Source of the DNA: Macrostomum lignano
Taxonomy: Eukaryota
Direction of reading: 5' to 3'
Assembly: GCA_002269645.1 (NCBI GenBank)
Contig: NIVC01001401.1
Coordinates: 1-64,000 of the forward strand
DNA: 64,000 bases
How positions within the stretch are numbered: position 1 is the stretch's first letter; every line of letters starts with the position of its first letter. The translations under genes and the position numbers were made by a program. Under the pieces are notes generated by a model, which worked only from the letters and a program-made list of their open reading frames with translations, searched no databases and was not told where the DNA came from. This document shows positions 14,095-37,420 of this stretch, piece after piece.

Positions 14095-16246
14095 GGTGCG
14101 ATTAGGACAGAAGGGTGAGATTAGAACAGAAGGGTGAGATTAGGACAGAAAGGGTGAGATTAGGACAGAAAGGGTGAGATTAAGACAGAAGGGTGAGATT
14201 AGAACAGAAGGGTGAGATTAGGACACAAAGGGTGAGATTAGGACAGACAGGGTGAGATTAGGACAGAAAGGGTGAGATTAGGACAGAAAGGGTGAGATTA
14301 GGACAGAAATGGTGAGATTAGGACAGAAGGGTGAGATTAGGACAGACAGGGTGAGATTAGGACAGAAATGGTGAGATTAGGACATAAAGGGTGAGATTAG
14401 GACAGACAGGGTGAGATTAAGACAGACAGGGTGAGATTAGGACAGAAAGGGTGAGATTAGGACAGACAGGGTGAGATTAGGACAGAAATGGTGAGATTAG
14501 GACAGACAGGGTGAGATTAAGACAGACAGGGTGAGATTAGGACAGAAAGGGTGAGATTAGGACAGAAAGGGTGAGATTAGGACAGAAATGGTGAGATTAG
14601 GACAGACAGGGTGAGATTAGGACAGACAGGGTGAGATTAGGACAGAAATGGTGAGATTAGGACAGACAGGGTGAGATTAAGACAGACAGGGTGAGATTAG
14701 GACAGAAAGGGTGAGATTAGGACAGAAAGGGTGAGATTAGGACACAAAGGGTGAGATTAGGACAGAAATGGTGAGATTAGGACAGACAGGTTGAGATTAG
14801 GACAGACAGGGTGAGATTAGGACAGAAATGGTGAGATTAGGACAGACAGGGTGAGATTAGGACAGAAGGGGGAGATTAAGACAGAAATGGTGAGATTAGG
14901 ACAGAAGGGTGAGATTAGGACATAAAGGGTGAGATTAGGACAGAAATGGTGAGATTAGGACAGACAGGGTGAGATTAGGACAGAAATGGTGAGATTAGGA
15001 CAGACAAGGGTGAGATTAGGACAGAAAGGGTGAGATTAGGACAGAAAGGGTGAGATTAGGACAGAAATGGTGAGATTAGGACAGACAGGGTGAGATTAGG
15101 ACAGACAGGGTGAGATTAGGACAGAAATGGTGAGATTAGGACAGACAGGGTGAGATTAAGACAGACAGGGTGAGATTAGGACAGAAAGGGTGAGATTAGG
15201 ACAGAAAGGGTGAGATTAGGACACAAAGGGTGAGATTAGGACAGAAATGGTGAGATTAGGACAGACAGGTTGAGATTAGGACAGACAGGGTGAGATTAGG
15301 ACAGAAATGGTAAGATTAGGACAGACAGGGTGAGATTAGGACAGAAGGGGGAGATTAAGACAGAAATGGTGAGATTAGGACAGAAGGGTGAGATTAGGAC
15401 ATAAAGGGTGAGATTAGGACAGAAATGGTGAGATTAGGACAGACAGGGTGAGATTAGGACAGAAATGGTGAGATTAGGACAGACAAGGGTGAGATTAGGA
15501 CAGACAGGGTGAGATTAGGACAGAAATGGTGAGATTAGGACAGACAGGGTGAGATTAGGACACAAAGGGTGAGATTAGGACAGACAGGGTGAGATTAGGA
15601 CAGAAATGGTGAGATTAGGACAGACAGGGTGAGATTAGGACAGAAGGGGGAGATTAAGACAGAAATGGTGAGATTAGGACAGAAGGGGGAGATTAAGACA
15701 GAAATAGTGAGATTAGGACAGAAGGGGGAGATTAAGACAGAGGGGGGGATTAGGACAGAAAGGGTGAGATTAGGACAGAAGGGTGAGATTAAGACAGAAG
15801 GGGGAGATTAAGACAGAAGGGGGAGATTAAGACAGAAAGGGTGAGATTAGGACAGAAATGGTGAGATTAGGACAGAAATGGTGAGATTAGGACAGAAATG
15901 GTGAGATTAGGACAGACAAGGTGAGATTAGGACAGAAAGGGTGAGATTAGGACAGACAAGGGTGAGATTAGGACAGAAGGGGGAGATTAAGACAGAAGGG
16001 GGAGATTAAGACAGAAGGGGGAGATTAAGACAGAAAGGGTGAGATTAGGACAGAAATGGTGAGATTAGGACAGAAATGGTGAGATTAGGACAGACAGGGT
16101 GAGATTAGGACAGAAATGGTGAGATTAGGACAGACAAGGTGAGATTAGGACAGAAAGGGTGAGATTAGGACAGATAAGGGTGAGATTAGGACAGAAGGGG
16201 GAGATTAAGACAGGGGGGATTAGGACAGACAGGGTGAGATTAGGAC
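14095..16246. repeat. 19-21-bp minisatellite GGGTGAGATTAGGACAGAAA
   Basis: More than 100 units; a short copy recurs at 19722-19876. Confidence 0.93.
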
Positions 16247-16519
16247 GCGAAATTTCCCTGGGAAGCAGTGCATGATCATTTAGCCAACAATGGACTTGAA
16301 TACTTATTGTTTATGACTTCAAACTTCAAAGTTTTTTTGAGATGCAAACAAGTCAATTTTGATCGGTTACTCTGGACCTTGATGGCAGAATGGTGGATTA
16401 TGCAAAAAAAGTTGTAGTAAAATATCGTCTCAGCAGGGCATGCAGGGTCCCGAACTCGGGGCAGTAAGTTAATAACATGAATTCATTATTAATTAGGCCG
16501 TGCTCTCACGGTGACCCCT

Positions 16520-16985
16520 GTGTTAGCACGGGGGCGGCCGGAAAACTCTGGCCCTCGCTGGGTTCTTTGAAACTTCACAATACGCTCGTGGCAATCCGGC
16601 CCGCTCAAGCTTTGTGTCTCTTCTCACCTCTCTCATCTCCTTTCTTCTCCTTTCCTCTCCTTTGCCTCTCCTTTCTTCCTCTCTTCTCTTATCTCTCTCA
16701 TCTCATCTCTCTCCCTCTTTTCTCATCTCTGATCTCCTCTCTCGCTTCTCCATTCTCTTCCTTCTCTCATCTCCGATCTCCTCTCTTACTTCTCCATTCT
16801 CTTCCCTCTTTTCTCATCTCTGATCTCCTCTCTCGCTTCTCTATTCTCTTCCTTCTCTCATCTCTGACCTCCTCTCTCGCTTCTCCCTTCTCTTCCCTCT
16901 TCTCTCATCTCTGATCTCCTCTCACCTGGCCAGCAGCCATAAGCTAGATTCTTGATCTGGCCTGTTTGTTTGCTAACCGCCCTGC
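16520..16985 (+). mobile_element. Degenerate copy of the CAGGGGTCGGCAAAC hAT-type MITE with an expanded CT-rich interior (duplicate at about 20151-20616)
   Basis: Shares GGCCCTCG...TTTGAAACTTCACAAT...GGCAATCCGGCCCGCTCAAG and CTGGCC...AGATTCT...CTGGCC with the reverse complement of 55234-55508. Confidence 0.6.
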
Positions 16986-17005
16986 AATAAAAACTGAAAG
17001 CCCTC

Positions 17006-17515
17006 CTACTTGTACGCATTAGTAATATTGAGCCGTTTAAACTGATCAAAATTAATTGACTGCCCCAGGCCGGCCAGCTCCTGCAGCACCGGTTTTGTCA
17101 GAATCGGTTCGCAATAAATTGTCAAATCCAGCTGGTTCACCCTGCCGGAGTTCTGGCCGTCAATCAGCTGGAACAGCCGCTGGGACACGCTGCACTCTCG
17201 GCCGTTGCCGTACACCGTAATGACAAAGTCCACGAGCTCCGATTTAGTCACATGATCCGGCAGAGTCTGCGAGAACAGCTCGCAACCGATAAACTTCAGC
17301 ACTCGAAAGTCGCTCTGCAGTTTCTCTTCGTCCAGCTTGTAGATCGGGCGCAGCTTGGCGTTGCGCGTGTTCTCAATGTACTGCCTGCGAGCCTTCTCCT
17401 CGGCTAGCACCAGCTTCTTGGCCAGCTCTGAGCAGTTCACCACCTGCTGGCCATCCACTGGCCGGCTGAGGGCGCTGTGGATCAGACAGGCTTTGGCCTC
17501 CAACAGTGCGTGCAT
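17006..17515 (-). CDS. Small intronless protein (169 aa) with an EF-hand-like segment, copy 1
   Basis: ATG 17515 follows a TTTGTCACAG acceptor-like site; GC-rich codon usage; LFQLIDGQNSGRVNQLDL resembles an EF-hand loop. No family recognised. Confidence 0.5.
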   Translation of the reverse strand: MHALLEAKACLIHSALSRPVDGQQVVNCSELAKKLVLAEEKARRQYIENTRNAKLRPIYKLDEEKLQSDFRVLKFIGCELFSQTLPDHVTKSELVDFVITVYGNGRECSVSQRLFQLIDGQNSGRVNQLDLTIYCEPILTKPVLQELAGLGQSINFDQFKRLNITNAYK

Positions 17516-18399
17516 GTTGTTGCTGCTGGTAGTGACCTTGACTGTGACAAATGACAATCGCAGAGAGTGCTGAGACTGCTCAGTATGGAGCTACTCACAA
17601 ATACGAGGATTGTGTCAATACAAAAAGTTCTGTATATTGAGGCATATCTTGATTTTAAAGGTTTTGCCATAGACAGTTTCATATGTAAAGAGCTCGTAGC
17701 TTCAGATTTGAGTCTTAAAAATAACTTTCTGTCTACGTAGTGAATATTTTCCTCTAGCACAAACTGGGGTGACTGTTAGTCCCGAACGCGACAGGATTGC
17801 ATCAAATGAGCATTCCAACGGGTCCTGAGAAAACTTTACCGTCATGAGGTATCTCAAAGGCTTGAAGTCTTCACCCTCTTAGAAGAGTGAAGAGCTAAAG
17901 CAAATCTGCTCAACTGCCGCAATGCTGCTCAGATAACCAATAGCCCATGTTTTCTGGGCAGTGTTGACCAGAAGCTGGTCATTTTGGAACTTACAACCTT
18001 TCAAAGTAGTTAACGAAGTCTCTTAGTTTCTTCATGATGTCATCAACGTTTTGACTGACTGACTGAGTCAATTGTTGTCAAATGATGCCGATTAAAGCTT
18101 AGTATTATTATTCACAGGCCAATATTGAATGCGTGAAGCTATAACTAATGAGAACTGATTGACAACAATCGAAGTCATAGGCATTGGAACACAGTACCGG
18201 TAAGACTTAAAGCACACCATGGTATCAAGCAACTCAGTTAAACGGTGTTCCAGCCCTGCAGAAAGTTTGCTCGTAAAAATGCGCTAGAAATTATGTTGCG
18301 GAGTCAGTCAGGGGAGAAAGGTCATATGCAAAAAGGATGAGAAGGAAAATGGGAGAGGGGGAGAGAGTGAGAGAAGGGCATAGGGAGAGAAGAGGGGAG

Positions 18400-18770
18400 C
18401 GTAGAGGGAGGGCAGAGAGGAAGGCAGAGGGAGAGCAGAGGGGAGGGCAGAGGGAGGGCAGAGGGGAGGGCAGAGGGGAGGGCAGAGGGAGGGCAGAGGG
18501 GAGGGCAGAGGGGAGGGCAGAGGGGAGGGCAGAGGGAGGGCAGAGGGAGGGCAGAGGGGAGGGCAGAGGGAGGGCAGAGGGGAGGGCAGAGGGAGGGCAG
18601 AGGGGAGGGCAGAGGGGAGGGCAGAGGGGAGGGCAGAGGGGAGGGCAGAGGGGAGGGCAGAGGGGAGGGCAGAGGGAGGGCAGAGTGGAGGGCAGAGTGG
18701 AGGGCAGAGGGGAGGGCAGAGGGAGGGCAGAGAGGAGGGCAGAGAGGGCAGAAGGGAGGGCAGAGGGAGG
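18400..18770. repeat. 11-12-bp GAGGGCAGAGGG repeat just 3' of the CDK5RAP1 stop (second copy about 22040-22394)
   Basis: Tandem units are visible and the number differs between the duplicated copies. Confidence 0.88.
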
Positions 18771-18774
18771 GCCC

Positions 18775-19720
18775 CTAAGCCGGCAGCGGGCGGGAGCTGT
18801 CCAGTTCGGCCAGAGCGCTGGCAAACCCGGCCGGTCCGTCGGGCACCGGCGCCAGCGGCTCGGCCAGCAGCGTCTGCGCGCCGGCGCTGTCGACTCGGGC
18901 GGCAACGAAATCACCGACGCGAATGTCGAACTGGTGAATTCGCTGCGCAGACTGCGGCAGCTTGGGCAGCAGCACCCGGATGCCCTGGTCGTTGCGGCCG
19001 CGCCACCAGTCAGCGGAGCGCCGACTGTCGCCTTCGATGAGAACCAGCTGGCGCTGCCCGACAGACAGCTGGTTGTCGGCGCTGGCGATGTCGCGGAACA
19101 CCCGATCGACCTCGGCGCTGCGGCGCATCTGCAATGATGTACACGGTATCCATAGCAACCGATGGCTGGGTAGATGTCTACCTGAACTCTTCCTGACATC
19201 TACCTGACATCCACATAAAATCTACATGACATCAACCTGACATCTACCTGACATCTACCTGACATTTATCTGACATCTACATGAAATCTACCTGACATCT
19301 CTCATCTACCTGACATCTACCTGACATCCACATGAAATCTACATGACATCTACCTGACATTTACCTGACATCTCTCATCTACATGACATCTACCTGACAT
19401 CTACCTGACATCTACATGAAATCTACATGACATCTACCTGACATCTACCTGACATTTACCTGACATCTACATGAAATCTACCTGCCATCTACCTGACTGA
19501 TATCTACATGGCATCTACATGAAATCTACCTGACATCTACCTCATACCTTAAAGTCTAACCAAATACAACGCACAGCTCCCAAAGTAAATAAGAATCAGG
19601 TAAACAAAACCGTCACCTTAACCTCCTCGGGCACATCATCCTTCATCAGCCGGTGAGCCCTGGTCCGCTCTCTCACGCTATAGGCATAGTGGTACACAAA
19701 GCTGTAACGCACCAGCCGCA
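18775..19720 (-). pseudogene. CDK5RAP1: Duplicated 3' fragment of CDK5RAP1 (partial penultimate exon 19617-19720 and last exon 18775-19128)
   Basis: Essentially identical to 22399-23344 but truncated mid-exon at the duplication junction. Confidence 0.8.
19185..19545. repeat. 11-bp ATCTACCTGAC minisatellite in the last CDK5RAP1 intron (second copy about 22810-23170)
   Basis: Tandem units are visible. Confidence 0.88.
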
Positions 19721-20636
19721 CCAGACAGGGTGGGATTAGGACAGAAATGGTGAAATTAGGACAGACAGGGTGAGATTAGGACAGAAAGGGTGAGATTAGG
19801 ACAGACAAGGGTGAGATTAGGACAGAAGGGGGAGATTAAGACAGGGGGGATTAGGACAGACAGGGTGAGATTAGGACGCGAAATTTCCCTGGGAAGCAGT
19901 GCATGATCATTTAGCCAACAATGGACTTGAATACTTATTGTTTATGACTTCAAACTTCAAAGTTTTTTTGAGATGCAAACAAGTCAATTTTGATCGGTTA
20001 CTCTGGACCTTGATGGCAGAATGGTGGATTATGCAAAAAAAGTTGTAGTAAAATATCGTCTCAGCAGGGCATGCAGGGTCCCGAACTCGGGGCAGTAAGT
20101 TAATAACATGAATTCATTATTAATTAGGCCGTGCTCTCACGGTGACCCCTGTGTTAGCACGGGGGCGGCCGGAAAACTCTGGCCCTCGCTGGGTTCTTTG
20201 AAACTTCACAATACGCTCGTGGCAATCCGGCCCGCTCAAGCTTTGTGTCTCTTCTCACCTCTCTCATCTCCTTTCTTCTCCTTTCCTCTCCTTTGCCTCT
20301 CCTTTCTTCCTCTCTTCTCTTATCTCTCTCATCTCATCTCTCTCCCTCTTTTCTCATCTCTGATCTCCTCTCTCGCTTCTCCATTCTCTTCCTTCTCTCA
20401 TCTCCGATCTCCTCTCTTACTTCTCCATTCTCTTCCCTCTTTTCTCATCTCTGATCTCCTCTCTCGCTTCTCTATTCTCTTCCTTCTCTCATCTCTGACC
20501 TCCTCTCTCGCTTCTCCCTTCTCTTCCCTCTTCTCTCATCTCTGATCTCCTCTCACCTGGCCAGCAGCCATAAGCTAGATTCTTGATCTGGCCTGTTTGT
20601 TTGCTAACCGCCCTGCAATAAAAACTGAAAGCCCTC

Positions 20637-21146
20637 CTACTTGTACGCATTAGTAATATTGAGCCGTTTAAACTGATCAAAATTAATTGACTGCCCCAGG
20701 CCGGCCAGCTCCTGCAGCACCGGTTTTGTCAGAATCGGTTCGCAATAAATTGTCAAATCCAGCTGGTTCACCCTGCCGGAGTTCTGGCCGTCAATCAGCT
20801 GGAACAGCCGCTGGGACACGCTGCACTCTCGGCCGTTGCCGTACACCGTAATGACAAAGTCCACGAGCTCCGATTTAGTCACATGATCCGGCAGAGTCTG
20901 CGAGAACAGCTCGCAACCGATAAACTTCAGCACTCGAAAGTCGCTCTGCAGTTTCTCTTCGTCCAGCTTGTAGATCGGGCGCAGCTTGGCGTTGCGCGTG
21001 TTCTCAATGTACTGCCTGCGAGCCTTCTCCTCGGCTAGCACCAGCTTCTTGGCCAGCTCTGAGCAGTTCACCACCTGCTGGCCATCCACTGGCCGGCTGA
21101 GGGCGCTGTGGATCAGACAGGCTTTGGCCTCCAACAGTGCGTGCAT
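20637..21146 (-). CDS. Small EF-hand-like protein, copy 2
   Basis: Translation is identical to 17006-17515. Confidence 0.5.
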   Translation of the reverse strand: MHALLEAKACLIHSALSRPVDGQQVVNCSELAKKLVLAEEKARRQYIENTRNAKLRPIYKLDEEKLQSDFRVLKFIGCELFSQTLPDHVTKSELVDFVITVYGNGRECSVSQRLFQLIDGQNSGRVNQLDLTIYCEPILTKPVLQELAGLGQSINFDQFKRLNITNAYK

Positions 21147-22398
21147 GTTGTTGCTGCTGGTAGTGACCTTGACTGTGACAAATGACAATCGCAGAGAGTG
21201 CTGAGACTGCTCAGTATGGAGCTACTCACAAATACGAGGATTGTGTCAATACAAAAAGTTCTGTATATTGAGGCATATCTTGATTTTAAAGGTTTTGCCA
21301 TAGACAGTTTCATATGTAAAGAGCTCGTAGCTTCAGATTTGAGTCTTAAAAATAACTTTCTGTCTACGTAGTGAATATTTTCCTCTAGCACAAACTGGGG
21401 TGACTGTTAGTCCCGAACGCGACAGGATTGCATCAAATGAGCATTCCAACGGGTCCTGAGAAAACTTTACCGTCATGAGGTATCTCAAAGGCTTGAAGTC
21501 TGCACCCTCTTAGAAGAGTGAAGAGCTAAAGCAAATCTGCTCAACTGCCGCAATGCTGCTCAGATAACCAATAGCCCATGTTTTCTGGGCAGTGTTGACC
21601 AGAAGCTGGTCATTTTGGAACTTACAACCTTTCAAAGTAGTTAACGAAGTCTCTTAGTTTCTTCATGAGGTCATCAACGTTTTGACTGACTGACTGAGTC
21701 AATTGTTGTCAAATGATGCCGATTAAAGCTTAGTATTATTATTCACAGGCCAATATTGAATGCGTGAAGCTATAACTAATGAGAACTGATTGACAACAAT
21801 CGAAGTCATAGGCATTGGAACACAGTACCGGTAAGACTTAAAGCACACCATGGTATCAAGCAACTCAGTTAAACGGTGTTCCAGCCCTGCAGAAAGTTTG
21901 CTCGTAAAAATGCGCTAGAAATTATGTTGCGGAGTCAGTCAGGGGAGAAAGGTCATATGCAAAAAGGATGAGAAGGAAAATGGGAGAGGGGGAGAGAGTG
22001 AGAGAAGGGCATAGGGAGAGAAGAGGGGAGCGTAGAGGGAGAGCAGAGAGGAAGGCAGAGGGAGAGCAGAGGGGAGGGCAGAGGGGAGGGCAGAGGGGAG
22101 GGCAGAGGGAGGGCAGAGGGGAGGGCAGAGGGAGGGCAGAGGGGAGGGCAGAGGGGAGGGCAGAGGGGAGGGCAGAGGGGAGGGCAGAGGGGAGGGCAGA
22201 GGGGAGGGCAGAGGGGAGGGCAGAGGGGAGGGCAGAGGGGAGGGCAGAGGGGAGGGCAGAGGGGAGGGCAGAGGGGAGGGCAGAGGGGAGGGCAGAGGGG
22301 AGGGCAGAGTGGAGGGCAGAGTGGAGGGCAGAGGGGAGGGCAGAGGGAGGGCAGAGAGGAGGGCAGAGAGGGCAGAAGGGAGGGCAGAGGGAGGGCCC

Positions 22399-25300
22399 CT
22401 AAGCCGGCAGCGGGCGGGAGCTGTCCAGTTCGGCCAGAGCGCTGGCAAACCCGGCCGGTCCGTCGGGCACCGGCGCCAGCGGCTCGGCCAGCAGCGTCTG
22501 CGCGCCGGCGCTGTCGACTCGGGCGGCAACGAAATCACCGACGCGAATGTCGAACTGGTGAATTCGCTGCGCAGACTGCGGCAGCTTGGGCAGCAGCACC
22601 CGGATGCCCTGGTCGTTGCGGCCGCGCCACCAGTCAGCGGAGCGCCGACTGTCGCCTTCGATGAGAACCAGCTGGCGCTGCCCGACAGACAGCTGGTTGT
22701 CGGCGCTGGCGATGTCGCGGAACACCCGATCGACCTCGGCGCTGCGGCGCATCTGCAATGATGTACACGGTATCCATAGCAACCGATGGCTGGGTAGATG
22801 TCTACCTGAACTCTTCCTGACATCTACCTGACATCCACATAAAATCTACATGACATCAACCTGACATCTACCTGACATCTACCTGACATTTATCTGACAT
22901 GTACATGAAATCTACCTGACATCTCTCATCTACCTGACATCTACCTGACATCCACATGAAATCTACATGACATCTACCTGACATTTACCTGACATCTCTC
23001 ATCTACATGACATCTACCTGACATCTACCTGACATCTACATGAAATCTACATGACATCTACCTGACATCTACCTGACATTTACCTGACATCTACATGAAA
23101 TCTACCTGACATCTACCTGACTGATATCTACATGGCATCTACATGAAATCTACCTGACATCTACCTCATACCTTAAAGTCTAACCAAATACAACGCACAG
23201 CTCCCAAAGTAAATAAGAATCAGGTAAACAAAACCGTCACCTTAACCTCCTCGGGCACATCATCCTTCATCAGCCGGTGAGCCCTGGTCCGCTCTCTCAC
23301 GCTATAGGCATAGTGGTACACAAAGCTGTAACGCACCAGCCGCAGCAGCTCCAGCGTATCCTCGTGATCAGCCTCCGTCTCGCCGCAGAATCCGCAGATG
23401 ATATCCCCGGTGATGGCCAGATTTGGCACCGCGGCCCGGGCGTCGTCAACCAGTCGCAGATAGGCCTCCCGACTGTAGCCTCGCCGCATCCGTTGCAGCA
23501 CGGCGGTGGAGCCGCTCTGCGCCGGCAGGTGCAGCTGCCTGGCCAAGTTGGGCCGCTCCCCAATCAGCTGCAGCAGGCTGGCTGGGAAATCTTTCGGATG
23601 CGGCGAAGTGAAGCGAAACCGACAGGCCGGATATCCGGCGCTCAGCCTGTCCAACAGGTCAGGGAATTGCAGCCCGCCGATTCGTTCGGCGTAGACGGCC
23701 GAGAAGCCGGGCGTCCGGCCAGCGGCGGACACGCCTGCGGAGCTGACGTCCCGATAGCTGTTGACGTTCTGGCCAAGCAGGGTGACCTCGCGGACGCCTC
23801 CGTCCACCAGGCGGCCGACTTGATCCGCCACGGCGTCCGCCGGTGTCGACCGCTCTCTGCCGCGCGTCTGCGGCACAACGCAGAATGCGCAATGATTGTC
23901 ACAGCCGCGCATGATGGACACAAATGCGGCCGGGGACTCCGGCTGGGCCCGGATCGAGTTCACGTCTGCGTAGGTTTCCTCTAGGGACAGCTGCGTGTTG
24001 GCTGCGGGGGTTGTGTGACACCCATCAGAGAGCTGTCTGACACCCAACAATGAGCTAGTTATGACACCCATCAATGAGCTGCTTATGACACCCATCAATG
24101 AGCTGTCTGACACCCAACAATGAGCTAGTTATGACACCCATCAATGAGCTGCTTATGACACCCATCAATGAGCTGTCTGACACCCAACAATGAGCAAGTT
24201 ATGACACCCATCAATGAGCTGCTTATGACACCCATCAATGAGCTGTCTATGACACCCAGCAATGAGCTGTCTATGACACCCAGCAATGAGCTGTCTATGA
24301 CACCCATCAATTAGCTGTCTATGACACCTATCAATGAGTTGTCTATGACACCCATCAATTAGCTGTCTATGACACCCATCAATGAGCTGTCTATGACACC
24401 CATCAATTAGATGTCTATGACACCCATCAGTGAGCTGTCTATGACACCCATCAATGAGCTGTCTATGACACCCATCAATGAGCTGTCTATGACACCCATC
24501 AATGAGTTGTCTATGACACCCATCAATAAGCTGTCTATGACACCCGTGACAGCCCGCAGTCTACAGTCAGTCACTCACCGCCCCTTTGCCCGCTGTCAGC
24601 ATCCACCAGCAGTCTGGGCAGGTCTCTGTACGCGTCCGGACCGCAGATGACGCGAACCACGGACGACTCGTCGAATAGCTTCGATTTGAGTCTCTCAGCC
24701 ATGCAGCCTAGCGGGAGAAAATTTAACAGATTGTAGTACTGAAGCGGTAGCTTGTGTGTGTGTGTGCTTGTGTGCGTGTGTGGCATACTCATATTGGTGA
24801 ACAGTCACTACTCTCTTACTCACAGGTGTAACACATATTGGTGAACAGTCACTACTCTCTTACTCACAGGTGTAAACACATATTGGTGAACAGTCACTAC
24901 TCTCTTACTCACAGGTGTAAACACATATTGGTGAACAGTCACTACTCTCTTACTCACAGGTGTAAACACATATTGGTGAACAGTCGCTAAGCCTAGTCAC
25001 GTGTGTTAACACATATTGGTGAACAGTCGCTAAGCCTAGTCACGTGTGTTAACACATATTGGTGAACAGTCGCTAAGCCTAGTCACGTGTGTTAACACAC
25101 ATTGGTGAACAGTCGCTAAGCCTAGTCACGTGTGTTAACACATATTGGTGAACAGTCGCTAAGCCTAGTCACGTGTGTTAACACATATTGGTGAACAGTC
25201 GCTAAGCCTAGTCACGTGTGTTAACACACATTGGTGAACAGTCGCTAAGCCTAGTCACGTGTGTTAACACACATTGGTGAACAGTCGCTAAGCCTAGTCA

Positions 25301-26645
25301 CGTGTGTTAACACACATTGGTGAACAGTCGCTAAGCCTAGTCACGTGTGTTAACACACATTGGTGAACAGTCGCTAATCCTAGTCACAGGTGTGTGAACA
25401 CATATTGGTGAACAGTCACTACTCCTAGTCACAGCTGTGTGAACACATATTGGTGAACAGTCACTACTCCTACTCACAGGTGTGACATTGTAAAGCAGCT
25501 TACCTAATACGCCCACAGTATGCGGCCGATGCTGTTTCAGGTTTGACAGCCAGTGCAACTTTTTTCTAATTTTATTTTCGGCTCCTTCGCGAATAGCGCA
25601 AGTCATTATTAAGTAAATATTTGCCTGCAAAAATAGGAGTGGAAATATCCCTCTTAACTACTGCAAGTAGAAAAGGCTACTATTGCGTGTGTGATGAATA
25701 CCCCAAAGCTGCCTACCTCTTGCCCGGACGACACAATTCTGTAGCCGGCCTTTGTTAAAATCGACATGACAACCTCCGTGTCGGCAAAGTTCATCTGGCA
25801 GCCGCGAGTCTCTATGAATACTGAGGGAATTGAGGCGGGTACTGAGGTGAATGAGACGGGTACTGAGGGGAATGAGGCTGGAACTGAGGGTAATGAAGAG
25901 GGTACTGAAAGGGAATGAGGCGGGTACTAAGGAGAACGAGGCGAGAACTGAGGGGAATGTGGCGGGTACTGAGGGGAATGAGGCGGGTACTGAGGGGAAT
26001 GAGGCGGGTACTGAGGGGAATGAGGCTGGAACTGAGGGTAATGAAGGGGGTACTGAAAGGGAATGAGGCGGGTACTAAGGAGAACGAGGCGAGAACTGAG
26101 GGGAATGTGGCGGGTACTGAGGGGAATGAGGCGGGTACTGAGGGGAATGAGGCTGGAACTGAGGGTAATGAAGGGGGTACTGAAAGGGAATGAGGCGGGT
26201 ACTAAGGAGAACGAGGCGAGAACTGAGGGGAATGTGGCGGGTACTGAAGGGAATGAGGCTGGTACTGGAGGGAATGAGGCGGGTACTGAAGGGAAGGAGG
26301 CTGGTACTGAAGGGAATGAGGCTGGTACTGAAGGGAATGAGGCGGGTACTGAAGGGAATGAGGCGGGTACTGAAGGGAATGAGGCGGGTACTGAAGGGAA
26401 TGAGGTCAGAGGCGGTGAGAGAAACAAAGCAAGCTACGCTAACCTGACTTTCCAAAGTGATTAGATAGATCCGATTGCTGCATCTTCTTTTGCAAAGCAG
26501 CATCTTGCAGAAAGTGTTGCAAACCCGGGCCGCTTTGCAGCAACGGTTCCTTGGAGGTGCGGGTTGCGGAGTACCGGCTGCAGAGGCTGCGACACCTCAG
26601 AAGCCGCAGCGCCAAAGAGGAATTCGCAATAAGAATCGAAGGCCG
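22399..26645 (-). CDS. CDK5RAP1: Mitochondrial tRNA methylthiotransferase CDK5RAP1 (MiaB family: UPF0004, radical SAM and TRAM domains), 6 coding exons
   Basis: Exons 26645-26444, 25820-25717, 25624-25504, 24707-24579, 24001-23241, 22752-22399 with compatible phases. Motifs [43 protein letters not shown], the radical-SAM [18 protein letters not shown] and the TRAM LVLIEG/GRND. No genomic ATG precedes the presequence. Confidence 0.95.
24016..24545. repeat. 24-bp minisatellite ATGACACCCATCAATGAGCTGTCT, same family as NOG1 intron 2
   Basis: About 22 units. Confidence 0.9.
24787..25484. repeat. 43-45-bp minisatellite (ACATATTGGTGAACAGTC core) in CDK5RAP1 intron 3
   Basis: About 16 units of two subtypes. 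Confidence 0.9.
25818..26405. repeat. 21-bp minisatellite GAGGGGAATGAGGCGGGTACT with higher-order repeats, CDK5RAP1 intron 1
   Basis: Tandem units abut the exon boundary at 25820. Confidence 0.9.
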
Positions 26646-27179
26646 CTGAAAGCACAGACAAAATATAAGTCTCGCATCGCATTTGTAGCGACTTTGCTGC
26701 TTTTGCTACTTATTAGTAAGACACTTGCGAGTTTTAATGCTTTTTTCAATGCTACGCATTTAATGCGAAATGATTAGCACAGAAACAGTGAAATGTATAT
26801 GAGTATTTTAGTAATTAAATACACATTTAAGACAAAAATCAGTATGACACAGCTGAATGGCCAAGTATATTTATTGTTTTCAGAGAAATATATACGTCGG
26901 CAAAACAGGACACAACAAGTGAGTCACATGGGCGTTTCGACAATTGATCTGCGGGTGGAACTGGCCACGCGCAACGAACGGATCAAACAGTCCAGGGCAG
27001 CATGCAGCGCTTCCAGGGCAAGTGAAATTGTGGCTTGGCTTTTTGACACTTGCTATGTGCTCTTGTCTGCAGATCCTGCCTTGCATCGAGACCTATTAGG
27101 GCGCTGGGATACAATATTGATGATTTAATGGACTGAAATGCGACGGTTGAGAATTGGGACAGGAAAACTCAGATTTATA

Positions 27180-27570
27180 GACTGGGGTTTGCAGATTTAG
27201 GTTTGGAGATTGGGACTTTAAGATAGGGATTTATAGATCGGGACTTTAAGATAGGGATTATAGATTGGGACTTTAAGATTGGGATTTATAGATTGGGATT
27301 CATAGATTGGGATTTATAGATTGGGACTTTAAGTTTGGGATTTATAGATTGGGATTTATAGATTGGGATTCATAGATTGGGATTTATAGATTGGGACTTT
27401 AAGATTGGGATTATAGATTGGGACTTTAAGATTGGGATTTATAGATTGGGACTTTAAAACTGGGATTCATAGACTGGGATTTATAGATTGGGATTTATAA
27501 ATGGGGATTTATAGATTGGGGATTCATGGATTGGGATTCATAGATTAGGACTTACAGATTGGGATTATAG
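27180..27570. repeat. 14-15-bp minisatellite AGATTGGGATTTAT / AGATTGGGACTTTA
   Basis: About 26 units. Confidence 0.88.

Positions 27571-28458: not shown

Positions 28459-37420
<8,962 letters not shown>

Follow-up and report, generated by a model that had tools for sequence, protein, structure and literature searches.

The stretch of DNA analysed here, referred to as the window, comprises the 64,000 nucleotides of NIVC01001401.1:1-64000 of the Macrostomum lignano assembly Mlig_3_7, and all coordinates given below are window positions. Its minus strand contains Mlig001456.g2, which by its sequence is an orthologue of CDK5RAP1 rather than of CDKAL1 or MtaB, and which probably obtains its start codon not from the genome but from the spliced leader (SL) that would be added to its transcript. 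The gene model was derived from a tblastn search with human CDK5RAP1, together with manual reading of the splice sites. It consists of six exons that contain 556 codons without a start codon, and GT...AG boundaries are present at every intron. Exon 1 (26444..26645, 202 nt) ends in phase 1 at the donor CAG/GTTAGC at 26444/26443 (GT 26443-26442), and is followed by exon 2 (25717..25820), exon 3 (25504..25624), inside which the coding sequence (CDS) fragments present in GenBank stop, exon 4 (24579..24707), exon 5 (23241..24001), which encodes the radical-SAM core including the CxxxCxxC motif CDNHCAFC, and exon 6 (22399..22752), which encodes the TRAM domain and ends with the stop codon TAG at 22401-22399.

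Several lines of evidence support the identity of the gene. The Pfam domains UPF0004 (PF00919; 91 bits, cutoff 27), which begins at residue 69, and Radical_SAM (PF04055; 76.8 bits, cutoff 29.5) score above their cutoffs, and the TRAM domain (PF01938) reaches 20.9 bits, marginally under the 21-bit Pfam cutoff; in these domains, as well as in the CxxxCxxC motif, the protein resembles metazoan CDK5RAP1 and bacterial MiaB. Additional motifs (GCQMN, TCAIRE and GCMAE), with the N-terminal cysteines for the second Fe-S cluster, are encoded by exons 2-4. The MiaB equivalog model TIGR01574 was passed with 360 bits (cutoff 355.3), and the MtaB-type models gave scores under their cutoffs. The best named matches outside Macrostomum are CDK5RAP1 proteins ("mitochondrial tRNA methylthiotransferase CDK5RAP1" or similar), whose alignments cover 84-95% of the query; identity to CDK5RAP1 of both vertebrates and invertebrates is 45-53%. 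The top matches in UniRef and GenBank are M. lignano entries with 99% identity, and the locus of GenBank entry PAA68361.1 (BOX15_Mlig001456g2) is base-for-base identical to the window. An initial annotation of the window, made from the DNA letters, had named the gene CDK5RAP1, and this name is upheld by the equivalog score, the domains and the named matches. The predicted product is a MiaB-type radical-SAM methylthiotransferase that would make ms2i6A37 in mitochondrial tRNAs.

The CDK5RAP1 frame is closed upstream by the stop codon TAG at 26706..26708 (minus strand), which is located 20 codons upstream of the CGG at 26645-26643 and is present in all three copies of the gene described below. 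There is no ATG in this frame between the stop codon and the sequence encoding the motif GPGLQHFL (26508..26531, minus strand; residues 40-47 counting the SL methionine), which was also recovered by tblastn with the human protein. The two nearby ATGs, at 26682 and 26677, are located in the two other frames, one in each, and start open reading frames (ORFs) of 73 and 26 codons. The motif, which can be written as GPxxxx[FY][ILVMF], is found 32-143 residues past the annotated methionine in 16 of the 16 metazoan orthologues examined, which are from vertebrates, insects, ticks, molluscs, annelids, nemerteans, echinoderms, hemichordates and nematodes. Because all these orthologues retain the motif after their methionine, the start of the M. 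lignano protein should be upstream of it. The M. lignano protein is like the metazoan ones in having the motif after a variable leader, which in this species is short and places the motif at residue 40 as compared to the range given above for the orthologues, but the locus differs from theirs in that it lacks a genomic initiator ATG.

The first genomic ATG that is in frame, which encodes Met55 in the sequence KKM, is located at 26481..26483 (minus strand) in the context aagaagATGc, with an A at -3. Another ATG, at 26501..26503 (minus strand), is present 20 nt ahead of it in the context caagATGc, also with an A at -3; it is out of frame and starts an ORF of 22 codons. Initiation at Met55 would result in a 502-amino-acid protein that keeps all the catalytic domains but has neither the presequence nor the GP motif. 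If the transcript were not trans-spliced, five ATGs (26826, 26759, 26682, 26677 and 26503) would lie ahead of the first productive one. The initial annotation had described the closed frame, the lack of an ATG before the motif, the out-of-frame position of the ATGs at 26682 and 26677, and the presequence-less product of the KKM ATG, all of which agree with our analysis; its coordinates were right throughout, but it had overlooked the ATG at 26503.

Two paralogous loci were compared with the window: g3, on NIVC01002145.1 (L001), and g1, which lies in the opposite orientation at 240-253 kb of NIVC01001401.1 (L002). Both share 98% identity with the window across 600 nt, and the three small indels are all located in the upstream non-coding part. 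Within the presequence codons, the copies differ by amino-acid replacements (I/T, S/T and T/A) and by a single synonymous change, without indels. These copies bear on the possibility, which the initial annotation had named as one that would overturn its proposal, that an indel error conceals an in-frame start at ATG 26682 or 26677. Such an assembly frameshift is unlikely, because the three separately assembled copies are free of gaps from these out-of-frame ATGs through exon 1.

The top motif at the trans-splice acceptors of M. lignano is [T/C]TNCAG, located at the junction (PMC8629364). An acceptor-like sequence, TGCTTTCAG, ends at position 26646 in phase 0, exactly as had been proposed in the initial annotation, and the hexamer TTTCAG (26646..26651, minus strand) fits the motif, which predicts an SL trans-splice junction at 26646/26645. 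It is the sole [T/C]TNCAG between the stop codon and the GP motif except for the out-of-phase CTGCAG at 26583-26578, and the remaining in-phase AGs (26700 and 26697) are embedded in a purine-rich context. Reading of the sequence also suggests a candidate branch point, ACTTATA (yUnAy-like), followed by a pyrimidine-rich tract, at 26648..26670 (minus strand); the A of the candidate branch point, at 26666, precedes the AG by 20 nt, and 13 of the 18 nucleotides of the tract (26665-26648) are pyrimidines. The motif match alone is not compelling. YTNCAG has 399 matches on both strands of the 64 kb and, because this corresponds to about one per 320 nt per strand, the prior for finding one in phase within the 63 nt that separate the stop codon from the CGG is ~6-7%. 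The site coincides, in addition, with the start of the transcript-based GenBank CDS of paralogue g3. The putative outron would span 26646..26900 (minus strand), where 26900 is a nominal upstream limit set just upstream of the TATATAT at ~26893-26887. Its ATGs at 26826, 26759, 26682 and 26677 open only short or out-of-frame ORFs, and in the two paralogous loci this region is 98% identical, with three indels versus none in exon 1. A search for an SL gene in the 64-kb window found none.

Evidence derived from transcripts comes from the existing annotation. To generate the Mlig_3_7 annotation, SL reads were trimmed and mapped, TBONE was used to split transcription units at SL peaks, RNA-seq reads were mapped end-to-end, and ORFs were taken from TransDecoder (PMC5730564). 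The GenBank CDSs of the three copies (PAA60495, PAA68374 and PAA68361) are all 5'-partial, and none of them starts with a methionine. PAA60495 (g3) starts with RPSTLIAN, which corresponds to the base directly after the predicted junction (L001 position 6001), PAA68374 (g1) starts with PST, 3 nt past the predicted junction, and PAA68361 (g2, the copy in the window) starts with IAN, 15 nt past it, at 26630. The mature transcripts do not appear to extend further upstream, because a 5'-open ORF would otherwise run back to the TAG. The UniProt models derived from an older, ML2-type assembly also lack a methionine and begin with FQRPS. The locus name Mlig001456 was sought in the literature and no mention of it was found. 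A query consisting of the N-terminal 144 amino acids retrieved only bacterial MiaB fragments from a 5.8-billion-protein index, whose word index is so sparse that even the 99%-identical UniRef entry was missed.

The GenBank CDS fragments of this gene are 112-117 amino acids long, and all three end with ...AIREGA in exon 3 (25560-25504), before the A-rich GAAAATAAAATTAGAAAAAAG, which suggests that the annotation pipeline took internal priming at GAAAATAAAATTAGAAAAAAG as a poly(A) site, thereby splitting the gene. The rest of exon 3 (3b) through exon 6 is unannotated in GenBank. The quality of the annotation at CDK5RAP1 is poor because the models are fragmentary. Mlig001456.g1-g3 and the UniProt entries starting with FQRPS have been logged as 5'-partial, and their ORF is probably complete with the SL ATG in place. 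Many such gene models would be mended by systematically adding the SL ATG at phase-0 trans-splice sites.

M. lignano has a single 35-nt SL, CGGTCTCTTACTGCGAAGACTCAATTTATTGCATG, which ends in ATG, as the initial annotation had stated for flatworms, and ~30% of its genes are trans-spliced (PMC8629364). The SL and its ATG are conserved in two other Macrostomum species, and the ATG has already been labelled a translation start codon (Wiberg et al., PMC10468722). In the annotation of M. cliftonense and M. hystrix, the reads retained their SL ATG. When the SL is joined to exons 1-6, its ATG precedes every other AUG and is in phase with the gene, resulting in an ORF of 557 codons; ATG followed by the sequence from 26645 onwards yields the 33-residue N-terminus that had been predicted. 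We favour initiation at the SL AUG because of the fit in phase and motif, the absence of a genomic ATG, and the CDS models that begin at or after the junction without a methionine, and we consider it probably the best explanation of the missing genomic start codon. It should be noted that trans-splicing at exactly 26646, initiation at the SL AUG, and import of the product into mitochondria are each inferred. The SL itself can be read without a stop in the frame that ends with its AUG (..VSYCEDSIYCM). ORF callers applied to SL-containing transcripts would therefore give, for every gene trans-spliced in phase 0, 5'-open ORFs with an SL prefix.

The sequence of events that we propose is as follows. 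The primary transcript would begin upstream of the gene, either at its own promoter or by read-through from the SOCS-box gene, whose end lies 1.8 kb further up, and would carry an outron with several unproductive ATGs. The spliceosome would join the 35-nt SL to TTTCAG/CGG at 26646/26645 and the outron would be discarded. The 3'-terminal AUG of the SL would then adjoin the CGG in frame and, as the first AUG of the mRNA, would direct the synthesis of a 557-residue protein, whose first ~33 residues (basic, hydroxylated and acid-free) would probably be a matrix-targeting presequence placed ahead of GPGLQHFL and the catalytic domains. A read spanning the junction is predicted to have ...TTATTGCATG fused to CGGCCTTCGA[T/C]TC; by copy, TTTATTGCATG would be followed by CGGCCTTCGATTC in the case of g2, or by CGGCCTTCGACTC in the case of g1 and g3.

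The codons of the putative presequence, encoding residues 2-33, are located at 26550..26645 (minus strand), and were assigned on the basis of composition and of orthology to a mitochondrial enzyme. With the SL methionine, residues 1-33 have a net charge of +7, contain nine Ser/Thr and are devoid of Asp and Glu, the first acidic residue being E34. Six Leu are present among the first 30 residues of the predicted N-terminus, and R-2-like sites are found after residue 26 (RY/SA) and residue 31 (RT/SK). In a crude test, the hydrophobic moment of the putative presequence in an 11-residue window was 0.48. It is plausible that mitochondrial import of the protein depends on the SL AUG.

Various observations weigh against this interpretation. 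The three GenBank CDS starts differ (0, +3 and +15 nt from the junction), and it is therefore improbable that a single SL-read peak determined all of them. The 90% protein cluster has five members, none of which has a methionine start, and no SL-bearing read, expressed sequence tag or complementary DNA (cDNA) was retrieved. When the exon-1 peptide was compared exhaustively with 1.84 billion representatives by phmmer, the single match was a frameshift-garbled M. lignano model, and no other Macrostomum orthologue was retrieved. The maximum Eisenberg hydrophobic moment in an 18-residue window was 0.26, compared to a shuffle mean of 0.42 in the same kind of crude test, and 94% of the composition-preserving shuffles reached the observed value. 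The presequence described in the initial annotation thus has partial support, in that its composition is suitable (charge and lack of acidic residues), but its hydrophobic moment does not rise above that of the shuffles. The predicted context of the SL AUG, tattgcATGc, is weak, with a U at -3 and a C at +4. Finally, g1 and g3 read TTTCTG/CGG and so have no AG at the acceptor (L001:5999-6000 and the L002 equivalent; 26647-26646 in the window).

With respect to this last point, all six exons are intact in g1 and g3 despite the CTG at the acceptor, and the UniProt models from the older assembly share the amino-acid variants of g1 and g3 (RPST...) and yet start with FQ, which implies CAG. The acceptor base may be polymorphic, may have been mis-called in one assembly, or the acceptor may have been lost in two copies. 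One possible consequence, to which we give only a small chance, is that SL trans-splicing acts as a switch, so that transcripts spliced at 26646 would obtain the SL AUG and their product would be directed to mitochondria, whereas leaky scanning or the CTG-bearing paralogues would give the Met55 form or nothing. If this were true, one acceptor nucleotide would decide per copy, in a hidden-polyploid genome, whether a start codon and a targeting signal are available to a paralogue at all.

The same weak context of the SL AUG makes leaky scanning possible, and this bears on the alternative that survives best, even though we consider it unlikely. According to this alternative, translation starts at Met55 (26483) and the region encoding the GP motif is 5' untranslated region, or else both forms are made via leaky scanning and have a dual localisation. 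The context of Met55 is good, with its A at -3, that of the SL AUG is poor, and the Met55 product would retain UPF0004, whose start at residue 69 is beyond Met55, as well as the radical-SAM and TRAM domains. However, the GP motif is part of the protein in every one of the 16 orthologues, orthologues are named mitochondrial tRNA methylthiotransferases, and no stop interrupts the 74 codons of the frame that precede Met55, where the differences between the paralogues are only in-frame and conservative. Moreover, the ATG at 26503, which has an A at -3, would intercept part of the ribosomes that scan past the SL AUG.

A cis-spliced upstream 5' exon might instead provide the ATG to the same TTTCAG acceptor, in which case the annotated models would simply be 5'-truncated. 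The state of these models, which are fragmentary and are also truncated in exon 3, would be in line with this, and there are 24 upstream ATG...GT combinations in phase 0 if any GT is counted as a donor. None of these 24, however, has the dominant donor of the species, GT[AG]AG, and no upstream exon was found in the three loci or in two independent annotations. The region in which such an exon would have to be located is bounded by the stop codon of another gene at 28459, 1.8 kb from the CDK5RAP1 acceptor, and a search of this 1.8 kb for an upstream ATG exon with a phase-0 GT[AG]AG donor found none. The initial annotation had indicated that an exon of this kind would refute its proposal; the scan gave no candidate with a consensus donor, and we regard this alternative as quite improbable.

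It is more improbable still that the SL is added further upstream, at the in-phase AG at 26700 or 26697, which would make the protein 17-18 residues longer (e.g., M-QSRYK...). These AGs, which follow the in-frame TAG, are in phase 0 and, unlike the AG at 26646, are kept in all three copies, so that their use would explain how the CTG-bearing paralogues still obtain an SL AUG; moreover, a branch-point-like element, TACTAAT, is located just upstream of them (~26718-26712). This putative branch point is, however, only ~11-14 nt away, the purine-rich context gtagcaaaagcag contains neither a pyrimidine tract nor a [T/C]TNCAG, and the CDSs derived from transcripts start at or after the CGG at 26645, none of them upstream. 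The least probable option is that a transcript without the SL is translated from a near-cognate CUG, either the CTG at 26657-26655 or the CTG that replaces the acceptor CAG in g1 and g3, since, even though these in-frame CTGs are four codons and, in g1 and g3, one codon upstream of the CGG, the four ATGs in the outron would catch scanning ribosomes earlier, there is no precedent for it in CDK5RAP1, and the annotation indicates that the mature transcripts stop short of the region upstream of 26645.

The surroundings of the gene have some additional features. The upstream gene on the same strand, of which 28459-29139 is the end and which extends upstream to ~36630, is annotated in GenBank as encoding 745 amino acids; the end of its product is formed by a SOCS-box-like sequence (SLQHLCRFEI...LPLPKSMRDYL), after which come long poly-Gln tracts encoded by (CAA)n. 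The 1.8 kb between its stop codon and the CDK5RAP1 acceptor contains ~400 bp of tandem repeat, and membership of CDK5RAP1 in an operon with the SOCS-box gene is borderline, being near the published 1-kb repeat-adjusted threshold. At the other end of the gene, a tandem direct duplication of ~3.6 kb (16169-19724 and 19800-23348, 99.3% identity) has copied a segment that runs from the 3' end of exon 5 through intron 5 and exon 6 into the start of the downstream gene (MHALLEAKACLIHS...), and the same arrangement is seen in a chimeric 934-amino-acid UniProt model.

Four of the five CDK5RAP1 introns (1, 3, 4 and 5) consist almost wholly of minisatellite, with a different array in each. In the order of these introns, the arrays are located at 25819-26405, 24790-25477, 24016-24545 and 22801-23166, and their units have sizes of 21/42, 43, 24 and 11 nt; arrays of 12 and 14 nt units are present in the 3' flank and the upstream region (22006-22396 and 27172-27570). 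The 21-nt unit of intron 1 (25819-26405, minus strand) contains acceptor-like C[TC]TCAG sites, and the last unit provides the real acceptor, ccctcag/TA at 25821/25820. Since a unit has 21 nt and can be read through in frame (VPASFPS), splicing to one further upstream would extend the protein by in-frame heptapeptide repeats.

The use of the SL AUG as initiator methionine in flatworms has been reported by Cheng, Cohen, Ndegwa and Davis (2006, J Biol Chem 281:733), and ORFs that use it are referred to as 'slORFs' (PMC9851317). In Schistosoma mansoni, the SL AUG is reported to be in frame in 28% of the trans-spliced mRNAs, and more than 40 cDNAs to need it. In Echinococcus granulosus, 143 of the 187 SL-bearing clusters are full-length by virtue of the SL ATG; these encode, among others, a putative NADH-ubiquinone oxidoreductase and a COX6B-like protein. 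Throughout the Neodermata, the SL AUG has a conserved use (PMC3510090). Every flatworm SL reported ends in ATG (PMC12582326). The novelty implied by the initial annotation was overstated in the light of these studies, of the labelling of the Macrostomum SL ATG as start codon, and of the enzyme variants discussed below. Because SL-AUG initiation in flatworms has been known since 2006, CDK5RAP1 is plausibly a new instance of a known mechanism and not a new mechanism.

The predicted CDK5RAP1 mRNA is similar to the SL-AUG mRNAs described by Cheng et al. in that the SL ends in AUG and would join the main ORF at a phase-0 acceptor, and in that there is no genomic in-frame AUG before the conserved N-terminus, so that the SL AUG would be needed for the full-length protein. 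It differs from the Schistosoma and Echinococcus examples in that the host is a free-living macrostomorph and that trans-splicing of CDK5RAP1 is predicted here from sequence. CDK5RAP1 is not named in those parts of the flatworm SL-AUG literature that our survey covered. If confirmed, this would be a case, in a free-living flatworm, of an essential mitochondrial tRNA-modification enzyme without a genomic start codon, for which both the initiator methionine and access to the targeting signal hinge on the SL. We also considered the phytochelatin synthase of S. mansoni (PMC3101182) as a precedent for an SL-dependent mitochondrial isoform and rejected it, since that gene is not trans-spliced. A closer parallel is provided by the thioredoxin glutathione reductase (TGR) of E. 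granulosus, for which Agorio et al. (2003, J Biol Chem 278:12920) reported that mitochondrial and cytosolic variants derive from mRNAs with alternative trans-splicing. In both cases, the mitochondrial or cytosolic fate of an enzyme is tied to trans-splicing at the 5' end, as reported for TGR and as proposed for CDK5RAP1 in the initial annotation, with the difference that alternative trans-spliced forms are reported for TGR and none are documented for CDK5RAP1.

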